Shown in pieces: positions 2,625 to 23,429 of a stretch of 64,000 nucleotides of DNA. The translations under genes were made by a program, and so were the position numbers. The DNA comes from Paramoeba atlantica (Eukaryota; Protista; Discosea): assembly GCA_977017575.1 (NCBI GenBank), contig CDRNVI010000083.1, positions 124,001-188,000 of the forward strand. Reading direction: 5' to 3'. Each line of letters opens with the position of its first letter. Positions within the stretch are counted from its first letter, which is position 1. The notes below the pieces were generated by a model. That model ran no database searches, was not told the DNA's origin, and saw only the letters and a program-made list of their open reading frames with translations.

Positions 2625-4466
2625 TCAAGTAAGTGACAGAACAATGGTTTCCTTTTCGTCGGCTTTCTTTCTATTCTCCCCTTTTTTACCGACTTTTCTA
2701 GCTTTTTTTGCGCTTTTTTCGGACGGTATAATATCCTCGTTGCGAGCTGTATTTTTGTGATAACGTTTTTGAAAAAGGGATTTTGATTTGTTGCACGACT
2801 CCTTTCGAGAAGCATTCACACCGACAAACTCAACTTCGGAGTCACTCTCGAGGGAGCACAGCAATATCCCCTCATGTGAAGTGGAGTTCTTCACTTCCTC
2901 AGATGATTTGAAGCGCTCAGATGAAGCCTCAGATGAATTTGGCTTCCTTAACACACTGAACTGTGTAAGAGAACTTTGTTTCAGCTCCTCCGGATTGCTC
3001 GACGTGGTAAAAGTTGCTCTGGAAATATCACTGGATTGAGCCACTTCGGTAGTGAAATCTATTTCCTCGTCCTTCACAGAAAACGCCTGAGGTAGTATAC
3101 TTTGTAGAGATTGTCGTATGGGATGGAGTGTAAGCTTAATTCCTAGTAACCTTAAATCCAACGGAAAGCCCTCTGTCCCTAATAATCGGTACGCACATTG
3201 GTGAATCACCTTTCTATCATTTACTGGAGTAGAAAGTCGGAAGCATCGTTGCTTTGTTTCAAAGGAAGTAAACTTCAGCTTTACGGTGACACATGACAAC
3301 AGGCTCGACTCCACATATTCTCCCAGGTAGTATTCCCACACCTTTGTAAACACTCTTTCGAACTGAGAAAGTAACGCCTCGCGGGTTAGCGGAGGAGGAA
3401 AAGTCCGTTCTTTACTAATGGAATGCTCGGTATCCTCGGTGTGCTTTGAAACGCGCAGAACCCGAGACGGACGTGACAAGGGCTCACCAATTTCACACAA
3501 GGAATCCGGAAAAGAACCACCCCATCCCCGAGCACACGACAGAAAGAACAGGGCCGTCTTTCGTGGCAGTGTGCCCCACAGAACGGCACTATTCGTGTTG
3601 ATATCTCCTAGAGTGTAAATATGCAGCGCATGAAGTTGCTCCTCAGCACGTTTGCCGAGAAACGGCACTTTCCGTACAGGAATCTCTCGCACATAGTCGT
3701 CAAACGCTTCTTGTGTCGTGAACGACAACACGGAGCAGCCATTGGGCTTTTCTTCCTGCGCCGCGAGCTTACTCAGCGAGGGGGTGGGGGCAACCCCGAC
3801 ACTACACGTCAGGGAAGTCAGACGGTACACCTCTGTACGCACCCCCTCTGCCACCTCCGCGGGACTCACCCCATGTGCCTCACAGTACGAAGTGAGATGC
3901 AGTGTGGCCTCATCACACGAGAGGGAGCGAAACTCCGGGTCATACCCCCGCAGCACGGATTGCCGAATCGAATCCCCGATAGCTTCGTATTTCGCAAACT
4001 GGCAGGGGACAATCACCAGGCTGGGGCACAGCTCACGCGCGAGGAACCCTGGCATCCCCGCACGCACACCGTATCTCCGGGCGTGGTAGTTGCTGGTGCT
4101 GAGCATGTAGTCCGAGCCCACGCCAAGGGGGACGTCCCCGAGGGCTGGACAGTCCCGCATCTCGACACTCGCGAAGAAGGCGTCCATGTCCATGTGGAGG
4201 TACGCCTCATGGAGAGGGGGGCGCCGGAGCCCCGCGTAGACCTGCCGCACCTCCTGCCCCCACCGTGCGAGCAAAGCAGGCTGGGACCGAGCATGTCGAA
4301 CTTTCTCAAGCCACAGCTGAATACGCCGTTGTGCCTTTTGGTTTAAAGCCTCCTGGTGTTGGTAGTATTTGGAGGCGCGAGCCCGTGTGCTGTTCAGTAC
4401 GGCATCGGTACGGGTAAGGTCCACCTCCGAGAGCCCGGCTTTGTGAGTGTTCAAGGTGAGGGGCAT
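2625..4466 (-). CDS. POLK: DNA polymerase kappa (Y-family, DinB)
   Basis: HMDMDAFFASVE, STSNYHARRYGVRAGMPGFLA..LCP and SCDEA catalytic motifs; little-finger region (SISKERTF, VTVKLKFTSF); N-clasp-like N-terminus. Confidence 0.95.
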   Translation of the reverse strand: MPLTLNTHKAGLSEVDLTRTDAVLNSTRARASKYYQHQEALNQKAQRRIQLWLEKVRHARSQPALLARWGQEVRQVYAGLRRPPLHEAYLHMDMDAFFASVEMRDCPALGDVPLGVGSDYMLSTSNYHARRYGVRAGMPGFLARELCPSLVIVPCQFAKYEAIGDSIRQSVLRGYDPEFRSLSCDEATLHLTSYCEAHGVSPAEVAEGVRTEVYRLTSLTCSVGVAPTPSLSKLAAQEEKPNGCSVLSFTTQEAFDDYVREIPVRKVPFLGKRAEEQLHALHIYTLGDINTNSAVLWGTLPRKTALFFLSCARGWGGSFPDSLCEIGEPLSRPSRVLRVSKHTEDTEHSISKERTFPPPLTREALLSQFERVFTKVWEYYLGEYVESSLLSCVTVKLKFTSFETKQRCFRLSTPVNDRKVIHQCAYRLLGTEGFPLDLRLLGIKLTLHPIRQSLQSILPQAFSVKDEEIDFTTEVAQSSDISRATFTTSSNPEELKQSSLTQFSVLRKPNSSEASSERFKSSEEVKNSTSHEGILLCSLESDSEVEFVGVNASRKESCNKSKSLFQKRYHKNTARNEDIIPSEKSAKKARKVGKKGENRKKADEKETIVLSLT

Positions 4467-4988: not shown

Positions 4989-7769
4989 TTAAATCCCAGT
5001 AGGTTCTCTAAGTGAAGCTTCACTCCCAGTAGGTCCTTTAAGTGATGCCTCAACTGTAGAACTGCCTGTACCCGCTTCAGACTCCGTCCCCAACAATTCG
5101 TCATACACAACGTCATGTACACTGAAGGAGTCTATGAAATCTTGAAACGAGATTTCTCCGTCCTGATCCACATCCACACAATTAAACAACTCCCGCATTT
5201 GAATGTTGTCCAATGGAGAGCTTAGAGCACGATTCAACATGGTCATCCCTTTGACAAAGGCATCGAGGTCCAGCACTCCGGAGCCATCGCGATCCATGGC
5301 ACGGAAGACGTGCTCTAGGCTCATCCGTCCGGAGATGAAAATGCTCTGCAGCTCTTGCATCACCTCTAGCTCCCACAGCGTTTCCTCCTGGGGCTCCGTA
5401 TCAGGATCGGTTTCGGAGAGGGAGTCAAGAATACGGTGGACGGAGAGAAAACCGTCGAAATCACGATCAAAGAATGTAAACAGGTGAAAGATCTCCGCGT
5501 CACGTAGTCCAATCCCAAGGTTGTGTAACAAACTCTCGAATTCGGTGAAAGTCACCACCCGGGCATCGGCGACTTGATGCAGTAATCTCTCCTTTTTGTC
5601 CCGGAGTGCGACACGTAGCTTATGCAGTACCACTCCCTCGAGTTGGTTCATCCAGCACAGCATCAGACGGTTCTGGTAGCGCCACAAGAACTGGGTGTAG
5701 TTTACCCGGTGGGTCTCCGGATCCTCCTCGGCGAGAAAGATGCGCAGGAAGAACCACGGGACCTCCATCGACAGCACCGTGCGCATCGCCTCCACCCACT
5801 CCACCTTCCACACCGAGCCCTTTTTCGTCACGTCCATGGTGTTGAAGTACTTGAGCAACTCGTGTCGCTTCACGTAGATACGCTCGCGAATGTACCGCAG
5901 CACATCCTCTACCGCGGAGGAGTGCGCGGGGTGGGGGGAGAGCCCAGGGTGGGGGTGCCGCGGAGAGTTCCCGTGAATCCCCTCCCCAGGGTGCAGCAGG
6001 GTGAGTTCCTGCATGTCATGGGCGCGGTAGGAGTGATAGCTGGGCTGATCCGCACGGGAGGCATTCACAATGGCATAGCTCGCACGGTTACTGTCCTCCC
6101 CGTCGTAGTTGGAGGCGCTAAAGATAGTGACCACCTTTCCCCCGTGGTGCTCTTCATACCCACGGAGAAAGGGCTCGTGACTACGGAGCAGCAAGCACAG
6201 CTGGTTGCGCTCCAGGAACGCCTCCGTAACGTCCGGGCCAAATAATGTCCCGGCACCGCGCTCGCTCACTCCCAGGCCCTCCTGCTCCCATGGGTCACTC
6301 CATAAGATATCCTGAAAGATGGTGTCCTCGGCACATTGATCGGACTCCGGCATGGGCATTGGGCGAAAGCGGTGAACAGCGTCAATGTGCGCTAGGGTAA
6401 CCCCTGGGAGGCGTGGAAGGCCACCGTGGAGAACCAGTACCTTCCGCGCAATACACGTACAAAGCGGAATAGCATTAAATGTGCGCTGAATGAGGTGGTA
6501 GATCGGCCGGTCATACTTCGTACTCACCTCCACGTCAAACCCGTAGTCCTCATTCATGTAGTACACCTCATGGTTGCCCCTGTTTAAAAACACCCCCTGG
6601 GGGCACGCGAGCATCATGGTGTAGAGCAGCAATAAGATCTCCACACTACTAGCGCCGCGGTCAACGAAATCGCCGTTGAAAACGTAGTACGTCCCCTTGT
6701 AAGGGTCAGGGAGTCCGCACTCGTGCAGGATGTGTACCAAGTCATGAAGCTGACCGTGCAGGTCCCCCACTACGACGATCTTTCCTCCCGCCGTCCAGCG
6801 ACCGTCGTAGCTCCGTGCTCCTTCTGGGGGATCCAGGTGTTGGACATTGGGCAGTGAGCGAAGATGACCCAGTGCCTCCTCACATACCCGCCAGGCGGCG
6901 GCATAGGGTAACCGGCCACCGGAAGTGAAATCCTCCATCATACACGTCGCCACAGACATAGTCAGTGGACTCGTGAGCTCTCGGGGAAAATAATGGTCTA
7001 CGGGAATGTCACTCTTGGTGCATTGTGTCGTCAGCGCCGATCTTTTTCGCGAAGAGTTTGTGAGTTCCCCGTTCCGACCACTTTTGTCGTTCATCGAATG
7101 ATGCTGCGTGACAATGTGGGACTCTCGCGCTAGGGTCATTTCCCGTAGTATCAGTCGGAATATATTTTCCGTTAGAATAGTGCGGCATCGCGCAAGACGA
7201 AGAGTACGCTGGATACGGATTGCAGCGTGCTCCAGTTCGGAGGTACCGTCGGGTGTCGAGCGCTCGACAAGCGCCAAAGGGGTCTCTACGGGAACAACCT
7301 CCCCCCTTTTTGCGCTGTACACCCCTTCTGGACAGTACTTTAGCAGACGTGGCAGAACCACGCGACCACACCCTTCACAACAGACCGGGTGACACCCCAC
7401 CGCGTGGGACTTAATCGTACGTAGAATAAAGCACTGCCCACACTTGAAGCATTCCATCGGCTTCTCCTGCTGACACTGTTGTTGGTGCTCAAAGTAGTTC
7501 TCAGAAGAAATCTCAGACTTGCACCAGGAATGGGTACAGCGACGTGTCGTAGATGTTGCTTTACCGGGGGAAGTAATAGAGGAAAATCTCTCCGAACTTC
7601 CGAACACTGACTCAGCCAGGGCTGCTTGTGCGACCTTCGGGGTGACCAGCGGAGATCTTGGCGCCACCAATGCATACTCTGCGGATAGATGAGATCTCGA
7701 CCCCGATGCATTATCGCACGTTGACGCAGGGCGTAGGTCTTGGCCGGACTTAGAACTAGCACAACCCAT
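4989..7769 (-). CDS. PPEF: Protein phosphatase with EF-hands (PPEF/PP7 family)
   Basis: PPP motifs GDLHGQ, NGDFVDRG, NRGNHE, HGG, RSHE, FSASNY; IQ-like AAIRIQRTLR; C-terminal EF-hands (DRDFDG, DRDGSG, DVDQDGEIS). Start set at MGCASSKS (Gly2/Cys3 acylation motif) rather than the upstream TTG. Confidence 0.93.
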   Translation of the reverse strand: MGCASSKSGQDLRPASTCDNASGSRSHLSAEYALVAPRSPLVTPKVAQAALAESVFGSSERFSSITSPGKATSTTRRCTHSWCKSEISSENYFEHQQQCQQEKPMECFKCGQCFILRTIKSHAVGCHPVCCEGCGRVVLPRLLKYCPEGVYSAKRGEVVPVETPLALVERSTPDGTSELEHAAIRIQRTLRLARCRTILTENIFRLILREMTLARESHIVTQHHSMNDKSGRNGELTNSSRKRSALTTQCTKSDIPVDHYFPRELTSPLTMSVATCMMEDFTSGGRLPYAAAWRVCEEALGHLRSLPNVQHLDPPEGARSYDGRWTAGGKIVVVGDLHGQLHDLVHILHECGLPDPYKGTYYVFNGDFVDRGASSVEILLLLYTMMLACPQGVFLNRGNHEVYYMNEDYGFDVEVSTKYDRPIYHLIQRTFNAIPLCTCIARKVLVLHGGLPRLPGVTLAHIDAVHRFRPMPMPESDQCAEDTIFQDILWSDPWEQEGLGVSERGAGTLFGPDVTEAFLERNQLCLLLRSHEPFLRGYEEHHGGKVVTIFSASNYDGEDSNRASYAIVNASRADQPSYHSYRAHDMQELTLLHPGEGIHGNSPRHPHPGLSPHPAHSSAVEDVLRYIRERIYVKRHELLKYFNTMDVTKKGSVWKVEWVEAMRTVLSMEVPWFFLRIFLAEEDPETHRVNYTQFLWRYQNRLMLCWMNQLEGVVLHKLRVALRDKKERLLHQVADARVVTFTEFESLLHNLGIGLRDAEIFHLFTFFDRDFDGFLSVHRILDSLSETDPDTEPQEETLWELEVMQELQSIFISGRMSLEHVFRAMDRDGSGVLDLDAFVKGMTMLNRALSSPLDNIQMRELFNCVDVDQDGEISFQDFIDSFSVHDVVYDELLGTESEAGTGSSTVEASLKGPTGSEASLREPTGI

Positions 7770-8573
7770 CAAAGCAAACGGATTCAGAACGAACGTCAAG
7801 AAGTCGCCAGATCAATTCAAAAATAATGAGAAAAATCTTATATCACATAAGCATCTTTAAAATACGCGCTGCCATTAATAATGATTGCGGTCGTTGTGTG
7901 ACTACCGCTCTATCCTTGTTTATTGAAAGAAACAGTGAAAATATAAAGAGGAACACAATAATAAACCAGATTGAAAGGGGCGAGGGAGATACGAAGCAAC
8001 AGGCGTGGCAGATTCCCACTGAAAAGAAACGGTATCTCCCCGCACGAGAAAAGCCTTTGCGCTTGCTAGCTCGGAGGAAAGAGTATTTAAATCGTCTAAA
8101 GGAGTTGGGGGTTGTAAAAAGGGATGGAGATATTCGGCTGACGCACGTGAGGCGTCCTGAGCGGGAAGAAAGGCCGAAACGTGAAAAGAGGGGGAAAACT
8201 TCTGCTTCCATGGAAGTACGCTCTGTTATTCAACTATAAGTAGTTCTAAAGTTTTACGTTTTATATTTTATTGGAAGGCCTAAGGGAAGGAAAAGAAAGG
8301 AAGGCCTAAGGGAAGGAAAGGTTCCAAAGTTACAGCATAGGTTAGAAATCAATTAGTTCGGCAAAACATCCTTATTCTATAGATTTTGACTGCATGATTA
8401 ATTTTAAACTTAAATAAATCATAATTTCAATAATTGAAATACAATGTATATTTCAATTTCAATTCTTACTTATCAATAGTTGCTTCTCGAGTGATTAAAC
8501 TTGTTTCTCCTACTATTTTTCCTGGTATGCCTTCTGAGCTCAATCCAAATCCAAATCCAAATCGTTCCGGATT

Positions 8574-8888
8574 GCTCCGGATGGTCACTGGCAAGCCAGA
8601 CCCTTCACAGACAGATTTGGAAGTTCCGAGGCCGACGTCCTCGACCAGTTTCCGCTTGTGCAAAAATAAAGCACCAACGTGCTGTTACCAACACGTTGCG
8701 TCGACGAACTGTACGTCAACACTGCCCACCCAAGAGGTTTAAGCCGGGTAAGGGAGCTGGTTCCCTGAGGGGAGGGTCCGGGACGGTCCTCCGAGTACTG
8801 GGCCTAGTCGGTTCTCAGCCCAGCCTCTTAGAGTGAGGCCGCCGGGAATATTGCGATGAGCGGGTTTCAACTCGCCGTCTGAGCACCA
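8574..8888 (+). ncRNA. Unidentified 315-nt structured RNA-like repeat with tRNA-like termini ending in ACCA (copy 1)
   Basis: 5' GCTC(C)GGATG can pair with 3' CGTCTGAGC, followed by A-CCA. T-arm-like GCGGG-TTTCAA-CTCGC and several internal stems with G.U pairs on this strand. Near-identical copy at 22713..23179. Expression is unproven. Confidence 0.45.
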
Positions 8889-9122
8889 TGTGCTTCAAAC
8901 TTTGAATTCTTGCCACTCCGCCACCTCCGCTCCCACTCCGCCACCTCCGCTCTTTTTTGTTTTAAGCCCCAGCTCCCTTCTCGGGAACCGGGGCCTTCAA
9001 GCGAACTTAGAGTTCGAAGCTTCTCATACCAACAAGGTACAGAAACTGTATCTTTATCGTTAAAGCTCAATGCATATCTGAGCTCAGTGCATGTGGGCTA
9101 ACTCATGCCACCCTTGAATATA

Positions 9123-22619: not shown

Positions 22620-23429
22620 CTGTACCCCCCCTACTTAATTGTCATCGCTTTTCGGGAAAAAGGACAATTAAATAGGGGGGTGCAAAATTTGAAGAAAGTA
22701 GGGGTAAGAAATTGGTGCTCAGACGGCGAGTTGAAACCCGCTCATCGCAATATTCCCGGCGGCCTCACTCTAAGAGGCTCGGCTGATAACCGACTAGGCC
22801 CAGTACTCGGAGGACCGTCCCGGACCCTCCCCTCAGGGAACCAGCTCCCTTACCCGGCTTACACCTCTTGGGTAAGCCGTGTTGACGTACAGTTCGTCGA
22901 CGCATCTCTAAGCCTCACTCTAAGAGGCTGGGCTGAGAACCGACTAGGCCCAGTACTCGGAGGACCGTCCCGGACCCTCCCCTCAGGGAACCAGCTCCCT
23001 TACCCGGCTTAAACCTCTTGGGTGGGCAGTGTTGACGTACAGTTCGTCGACGCAACGTGTTGGTAACAGCACGTTGGTGCTGTTTTTTTTAGGACAAGCG
23101 GAAACTGGTCGAGGACGTCGGCCTCGGAACTTCCAAATCTGTCTGTGAAGGGTCTCGCTTGCCAGCGACCGTCCAGAGCGATCCGGAATGATTTGTATTT
23201 TTGGATTCTGTTTTGGAAAAAATGAGCCAATATTGTGTAACAAGATGTAATAAGGTGCTCGTAGGTAGGTGCTCATAGGTAGGTGCTCGTATCACATTAC
23301 ACTAGAAAATGAAAAAATGAAAAAAAAAGAATCGGCGCCGCTTCGCGACGCCTCGTGCGCAAGGCTCTGTCAAAAAGGACAATTAAATAGGGGGGGTAGA
23401 GGGGTGACAATTAAGTAGGGGGGGTACAG
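22620..23429. mobile_element. TA-flanked TIR element carrying the structured RNA-like repeat
   Basis: TA|CTGTACCCCCCCTACTTAATTGTCA ... TGACAATTAAGTAGGGGGGGTACAG|TA. Confidence 0.85.
22713..23179 (-). ncRNA. Structured RNA-like repeat, copy 2, with about 150-bp internal tandem duplication
   Basis: Reverse complement of 8574..8888. Homology stops exactly at CCA. Confidence 0.45.

Follow-up and report, generated by a model that had tools for sequence, protein, structure and literature searches.

Family membership and boundaries of the repeat

The structured repeat at positions 8574-8888 of the 64,000-nt stretch of DNA analysed here (the window) raises the question of whether it encodes an RNA with tRNA-like ends that finishes at CCA, as the original prediction held, or is part of an element with other ends and another sense. 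The 45.7-Mb assembly (248 contigs) was searched with window positions 8550-8888 as query, which led to 484 first-look candidates. Forty of them were scored, and among these nearly all were full-length, spread over many contigs and 93-95% identical to the window copy. Thirty-two distinct copies were aligned together with their flanks. With a probability of about 0.88, the repeat belongs, as one copy, to a young and dispersed family of tRNA-related SINEs, the functional strand of which is opposite to the one originally read. This reading is carried by family membership, boundaries, strand, tRNA relatedness, target-site duplications, an empty site and low divergence.

Two near-identical copies do occur in the window, as first reported. 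Positions 8548-8839 are 95.3% identical to 23207-22912, and 8697-8888 are 96.9% identical to 22904-22713. The homology between these two copies sets in ~26 nt ahead of 8574 and its last position is 8888, the end of CCA, so the limits first described hold for the pair but not for the family. Of 32 other copies, 31 stay homologous for 42 nt (TGTGCTTCAAACTTTGAATTCTTGCCACTCCGCCACCTCCGC) beyond CCA, to ...GCCACTCCGCCACCTCCGC, and the same 42-nt extension is present in the first window copy itself (copy 1), at 8889-8930. The statement that nothing is conserved past CCA is thus specific to the second window copy (copy 2), whose truncation at consensus position 43 is the sole reason why the homology of copies 1 and 2 stops there. 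The CCA at 8886-8888 is the complement of TGG at positions 43-45 of the element. Since the ends of the SINE do not coincide with CCA, the repeat is not a CCA-terminated template. The original prediction itself named copies with ends elsewhere than at CCA as refuting evidence, and such copies are what was found.

The model of a plus-strand structured non-coding RNA with tRNA-like ends and a CCA terminus, whether a Mauriceville-like template for reverse transcriptase (RT), a tmRNA-like or a viral tRNA-like molecule, was drawn from real features. The hairpin GCGGG-TTTCAA-CTCGC and the internal stems listed with it are present. Like the RNAs named, the plus strand carries a T-arm-like hairpin that precedes ACCA, and in the fold of the 315-nt excerpt this hairpin appears together with a GCUC/GAGC closure, and the alignment of the two window copies breaks off right after CCA. 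Unlike in those RNAs, CCA is here internal to the element, and the T-arm-like hairpin corresponds, on the other strand, to the degenerate T arm (B box) located in the head of the SINE. The acceptor-like pairing of the ends comes down to the four Watson-Crick pairs of GCUC/GAGC, and the excerpt is no more stable than its shuffles (z -1.0; 16 of 100 shuffles as stable). No tRNA similarity was found on the plus strand (z -0.9 to 1.5), and ARAGORN reported neither a tRNA nor a tmRNA in the window. Rfam gave no match for the whole window at gathering thresholds, and only chance matches in relaxed searches of 701 nt and 101 nt. Read in this sense, the element would also have to open with a variable oligo-A/(AAATCC)n run, unlike any known 5' end. 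Given these results, we attach a very small probability to the CCA-ended molecule. The accompanying idea of a non-autonomous RT template survives, as a SINE; its strand, end and mechanism had to be abandoned, the tRNA likeness being on the opposite strand and at the 5' end.

Element architecture

The SINE consensus has a length of 379 nt and four modules, namely head, body, 3' domain and tail. The span conserved in the 32 aligned copies runs from GCGGAGG... to ...GATTTGGA and is followed by a variable tail. On the SINE strand the element starts with GCGGAGGTGGCGGAGTGGCAAG and ends with ...TCCGGAGCAATCCGGAATGATTTGGA, after which T runs or (TTTGGA)n follow; on the strand originally read, one end of each aligned copy passes into a variable stretch of oligo-A/(AAATCC)n. 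Judging from the variable simple-repeat tail and the target-site duplications, the 3' end of the element is the one opposite to the tRNA-like part. The head comprises ~80 nt and the GC-rich, structured body ~270 nt; Rfam gave no match for the body at E-values up to 10. In the 3' domain of the minimum-free-energy fold, TCCAAATC pairs with GATTTGGA around two hairpins, and the last 3' hairpin (TCCGGA-GCAA-TCCGGA) is followed by ATGA. The tail varies among copies (T6-T18, (TTTGGA)n and mixtures of the two) and immediately precedes the duplicated target. An oligo-T tail is unusual among SINEs and counts against the SINE reading.

The first 15-24 nt of the head are tandemly reiterated two to five times in 9 of the 32 copies. 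Such reiterated heads were located at window positions 8913-8952 and in loci L005, L006, L009, L016, L017/L018, L027 and L030 (near position 1860). Within a single copy the units mostly agree at 100%, but their borders differ among copies. The flanks of the SINE copies hold many unrelated tandem repeats of 17-20 nt. The element contains no convincing ORF, as the longest stop-free stretch covers 109 codons and is situated in GC-rich sequence. Any reading frame would in addition be broken by the 143-nt duplication of copy 2.

Strand of the element

Six independent observations back the SINE strand: tRNA similarity, promoter-like boxes, folding, substitutions, the ends of resident LINEs and a fusion with spliced-leader RNA. 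Concerning folding, the minimum free energy of the consensus is -158.8 kcal/mol on the SINE strand vs. -138.9 kcal/mol on the strand originally read. The window copy reaches -151.2 kcal/mol on the SINE strand (z -3.0, with 0 of 100 shuffles as stable) and -132.2 kcal/mol on the other (z -1.4, with 11 of 100 as stable). Concerning substitutions, pairs are retained by one-sided changes among copies in 69 of 124 cells on the SINE strand vs. 24 of 93 on the opposite one, although inherited variants inflate such counts and the evidence that they provide for the strand is therefore mild. Both comparisons run against the proposal that wobble pairs favor the plus strand. No compensatory double changes were detected among the copies, whose divergence of ~1% is too low for statistical power. 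The ORFs of the resident LINE copies L063 and L065 fix the sense of these elements, both of which close with a hairpin, TG and a T/G-rich microsatellite. Finally, copy 1 is fused to a spliced-leader RNA copy whose sense agrees with that of the SINE.

tRNA relatedness of the head

Local alignment of the head with the tRNA-Leu(UAG) of this genome showed a 67.9% identity over 81 columns. For the first 80 nt, 59 columns were identical to this tRNA, with a z of 7.2 against shuffles, while the other five class II tRNAs compared (Leu, Ser) gave z values of 3.8-5.8. The reverse complement of the head behaved like shuffled sequence against class II tRNAs, with the z range of -0.9 to 1.5 given above. 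When three variants of the head were compared with the six class II tRNAs, five of these gave identities of 62-69%. SINEBase defines SINEs as short and interspersed, with at least 100 copies and at least 60% tRNA identity over at least 60 nt (PMC3531059), and the similarity of the head lies above that last threshold.

The head also harbors two promoter-like boxes. The A box TGGCGGAGTGG, at consensus positions 8-18, fits TRGCNNAGTGG exactly. The B box GAGTTCAAACC, at positions 58-68, has one mismatch, and its variant GGGTTCAAACC in L031/L032 is exact. According to SINEBase, A and B boxes count as an indication only (PMC3531059). A functional tRNA gene was considered for the head and rejected, because its cloverleaf is recognised neither by ARAGORN nor by the Rfam tRNA model. 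Specifically, RF00005 gave no match at E-values up to 10 in the 701-nt and 101-nt searches, and ARAGORN returned 0 tRNAs in the window and in the SINE loci. As the tRNA detectors make no call on the head, its descent is argued from pairwise similarity and the boxes, and on these grounds the head appears to derive from a class II tRNA, the closest one here being tRNA-Leu(UAG).

Contigs C143, C144, C149, C164, C170, C177 and C108-C133 stand apart from the rest: among them are contigs with dense tRNA genes distinct from those of the SINE-bearing contigs, and AT-rich repeated contigs with organelle-like tRNAs. The tRNA-dense and AT-rich contigs are probably co-assembled bacteria or organelle DNA.

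Copy number, age and mobility

The 20-mer TCCGGAGCAATCCGGAATGA at the 3' end of the SINE has 270 exact matches in the genome and 0 in a reversed control, well over the 100 copies of the SINEBase definition. In agreement with the remainder of that definition, the 379-nt consensus is shorter than 1 kb and the copies are interspersed and non-tandem, lying on many contigs with differing flanks. The 20-mer of the head has 143 exact matches. Comparison of the two counts reveals no clear excess of 5'-truncated copies when the head polymorphism (GAATTC vs. GAGTTC) is allowed for, and this polymorphism, together with array variants, is the reason why head and tail counts cannot gauge 5' truncation. The copies diverge from the consensus by 0.3-3.4% (median 1.15%), and copy 1 of the window by 4.3%. 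Such low divergence indicates a young family, which is probably still active.

At least 17 of 31 copies lie between target-site duplications, which measure 8-30 bp. An empty site was also identified: the paralogous locus L073 lacks the element that is present in L006, with flanks 99-100% identical, and comparison of the two revealed a clean insert of 406 nt with an 11-bp duplication (GGTGACATGAT). The SINE therefore displays both marks by which retroposition is recognised, namely variable duplications and filled vs. empty sites. Many of the duplications start with G, GA or GGA and so overlap the tail unit, a pattern compatible with annealing of the tail to the nicked target. In L006 (880-1500, minus strand) the SINE is inserted in a repeated, protein-coding-looking sequence with at least 13 copies in the genome. 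This coding-like repeat contains GTGACCAATACGGAATGTGATTTGGATTTGGA, which resembles the 3' end of the SINE, either by coincidence or through target preference.

A minority of the copies ride as passengers in tandem arrays. A ~3.96-kb array of at least 31 units occupies C10:200-28000 and C105:3400-96200 (L071 represents one unit), and each unit contains one full SINE, 95% identical to the consensus, together with older fragments of 84-88%. Evenly spaced matches were also found on C12 (6,485-bp spacing) and C21 (~1,995-bp spacing). Taken by themselves, these arrays on C10, C105, C12, and C21 would be in line with an immobile sequence, either a cellular RNA gene in many copies or a product of segmental duplication. 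Such an origin is, however, very improbable in view of the dispersed copies with different flanks and individual target duplications, the empty paralogous site in L073, and the occurrence of 5'-truncated copies. The most extreme of the latter measures just ~34 nt and consists of the terminal hairpin and the tail alone (L066 1523-1556, C3:45413-45456; a duplicate is at C30:618630).

The two copies of the window

The surroundings of the two window copies had been described as unrelated; each copy is an insertion, and copy 1 is bounded by a 10-bp target-site duplication at 8533-8542 (3'-side) and 9077-9086 (5'-side). The duplicated 10-mer is TCTGAGCTCA on the plus strand and TGAGCTCAGA in element orientation, and by our estimate the chance expectation of such a match in windows of this size is ~0.001. 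Next to the 3'-side duplication lies the tail of copy 1, (TTTGGA)3 T, on the minus strand at 8543-8561, its length and composition being among those that vary between copies. The 3' terminal hairpin (8566-8581 in the minimum-free-energy fold) and ACGA (consensus ATGA) occupy 8562-8581 on the minus strand. The GC-rich body with its several hairpins extends over 8582-8850 (minus strand; fold z -3.0, as above) and aligns to consensus 81-350. The tRNA-related head (consensus 1-80) covers 8851-8930 on the minus strand, with the A box at 8913-8923 and the B box at 8863-8873. A second tandem unit of the first 18-20 nt of the head follows at 8931-8952 (minus strand), and TRF reported this reiteration at 8913-8952 with a period of 20, 2.0 copies and a 100% match.

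Beyond the reiterated head, positions 8953-9076 (minus strand) contain, besides an A-rich linker, 103 nt copied from the spliced-leader RNA (8963-9065) and a further 11 nt (9066-9076). Read in element sense, copy 1 thus consists of the 11 nt, the spliced-leader copy (9065-8963), the A-rich linker, two 20-nt head units and the SINE. The spliced-leader copy comprises the exon and part of the intron. It is 99-100% identical to units of ~2.56-kb tandem arrays on C97 and C107, and the homology is confined to the 103 nt. It holds the core CAGTTTCTGTAC, followed by GTATGAGAAGC, and the same arrangement of the core is found in published kinetoplastid leaders (PMC3795323). On the basis of this spliced-leader sequence the host is called kinetoplastid-type.

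A single pair of duplications surrounds the spliced-leader copy and the SINE together, which argues for one retroposition event. The arrangement suggests that the reverse transcriptase changed template in copy 1, leaving the SINE RNA at its 5' end for the spliced-leader RNA. In mammals, chimeric U6-L1 retrocopies are made by template switching of the LINE reverse transcriptase. Copy 1 resembles them in that a retroposon and, attached at its 5' end, a small nuclear-type RNA copy (103 nt) of the same sense share one duplication pair, but its acceptor is the spliced-leader RNA and its donor a SINE. One clean spliced-leader chimera (copy 1) and one mosaic (L082) were seen. The latter (C11:274060-274330) is a mosaic of small RNAs composed of the spliced-leader exon with 11 nt of intron, TAAAAAGG, and a shortened SINE head that runs to the B box, after which another tRNA-like piece with GGTTCGATTCC is present.

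Copy 2 (22713-23225, plus strand) is a 5'-truncated SINE that begins with TGGTGCTCAG... at consensus position 43 and has a degenerate tail. Positions 22713-22904 align to consensus 43-234 and positions 22912-23202 to consensus 92-377. The overlap reflects an internal tandem duplication of 143 nt that matches window 8697-8839 and does not figure in the original prediction. A weak candidate pair for its target duplication is GTAAGAAAT / GGAAAAAAT. Both window copies have a T-rich replacement of consensus CCGCCTTGG.

The two SINE copies of the window fall between ORFs. The neighboring ORFs (minus strand, 2625-4466 and 4989-7799) code for a Y-family DNA polymerase (impB/mucB/samB family) and a calcineurin-like phosphatase that has EF hands, and the other eight window ORFs scanned had no Pfam match.

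Relationship to resident LINEs and proposed mechanism

Resident LINEs are very abundant in this genome, with 1851 RT candidates. The partner LINE was sought by BLAST with the consensus and its last 150 nt against 20 RT loci, three LINE 3' regions and the window, and no match other than SINEs was obtained. Four genome-wide patterns, built on 3' hairpins or tail anchors and each with a position that excludes the SINE base, likewise revealed no partner; they returned only mutated SINE copies, the 34-nt truncated copy of L066 (C3:45413), microsatellite sequence and the coding repeat of L006 with TGATTTGGATTTGGA. A motif scan of the sampled sequence for the hairpin, TGA and a T run produced no LINE candidate. 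One LINE end that stands beside a SINE, in L030, was considered as the partner and rejected, as it belongs to an interrupted LINE and the tail of that RT and RNase H family is (ATAGG)n.

All of the LINE 3' ends sampled have tails unlike that of the SINE. The tails of the LINE families in L044-L049, L048, L062, L063, L065, and L078/L080 are (ATC)n, (CAA)n, (AAAT)n, (TTG/TTTG)n, (TTGG)n, and (ATAGG)n, and several resident families possess a hairpin just upstream of the tail. The 3' plan of the SINE, that is a hairpin, TG(A) and a T/G-rich repeat, resembles the LINE ends of L063 and L065, although no LINE of the same sequence was found. L050 ends with ATCTC, a hairpin and TGA directly before spliced-leader sequence, as a site-specific CRE-like element would.

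Four clades of retroelements have been described in kinetoplastids (ingi, CRE, VIPER and TATE), with RIME, NARTc and SIDER as short forms (PMC12278014; PMC4728078). RIME, NARTc and SIDER are non-autonomous derivatives of ingi/L1Tc in trypanosomatids (PMC12278014). The present family could accordingly be regarded as a deletion derivative of a LINE of this kind, expressed by read-through or from a LINE-type promoter, in which case the tRNA likeness would be incidental. In favor of this reading, no short retroposons other than such derivatives have been described from kinetoplastids to date (PMC12278014), the head escapes the tRNA covariance model, and resident LINEs abound. The SINE also shares with RIME, NARTc and SIDER a short, non-coding retroposon nature, dependence on a LINE enzyme and target duplications. 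However, those elements are deletion derivatives with LINE ends in common and poly(A) tails, whereas the SINE has a tRNA-like head, a T-rich tail and no sequence in common with the LINEs examined; neither of its ends recurs in the 20 RT loci, the three LINE 3' regions or the pattern matches. The identity of the head to tRNA, above the SINEBase threshold, and its exact A-box consensus further oppose a LINE origin. Since it has no poly(A) and no end in common with the LINEs examined, the element is not of RIME/NARTc/SIDER type, and we regard derivation from a LINE as improbable.

For the tRNA-related SINE preferred here, the following mechanism is proposed. RNA polymerase III would transcribe a master copy from its internal boxes, and the T run may act as terminator. 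The 3' hairpin and tail of the SINE RNA would be recognised by a resident LINE's reverse transcriptase, and target-primed reverse transcription would then insert a DNA copy and generate the 8-30-bp duplications. Variation in tail length may arise by slippage. Upon reaching the 5' end of the RNA, the enzyme would in some cases stop early (as in copy 2, at position 43), in others re-copy the first 15-24 nt and leave reiterated heads, and in others switch to a different RNA, as in the spliced-leader fusion of copy 1.

Comparison with known elements and significance

The family has in common with SINEs its head, body and tail modules, its A and B boxes, a tRNA identity of at least 60%, more than 100 copies and target-site duplications. 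SINEs of the "stringent" type carry a 3' stem-loop and short tail repeats that are recognised by the reverse transcriptase of their partner LINE, UnaSINE1/UnaL2 of the eel being an example. The present element resembles these in its 3' hairpin beside a short repeated tail and in an occasional internal duplication, as in the quasi-dimeric copy 2. It differs from the SINEs compared in its TTTGGA/oligo-T tail, which is not A-rich, and in the frequent reiteration of its first 15-24 nt.

A literature search found no paper on tRNA-derived SINEs in kinetoplastids. It is conceivable, if doubtful, that the family represents the first polymerase III-type SINE of Kinetoplastea and that its hairpin and oligo(U) end are used by a bodonid LINE, the reverse transcriptase of which habitually re-copies ~18 nt and switches to spliced-leader RNA. 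If this were true, re-copying and spliced-leader switching would constitute a 5'-end chemistry of a distinctive kind that has not been described in other pairs of LINE and SINE.

The analysis removes a false lead, as there is no CCA-ended tRNA-like RNA at 8574-8888, and it documents a young tRNA-related SINE in a group for which the literature searched gives only LINE-derived short elements. Recognition of the family helps the annotation of this genome, in which its copies would otherwise be labeled as structured RNAs or as repeats of unknown kind, and individual copies are usable as insertion markers of strains. The features most deserving attention are the reiterated 5' heads and the spliced-leader chimera, which are natural reporters of how the resident reverse transcriptase behaves at the 5' end of its template.
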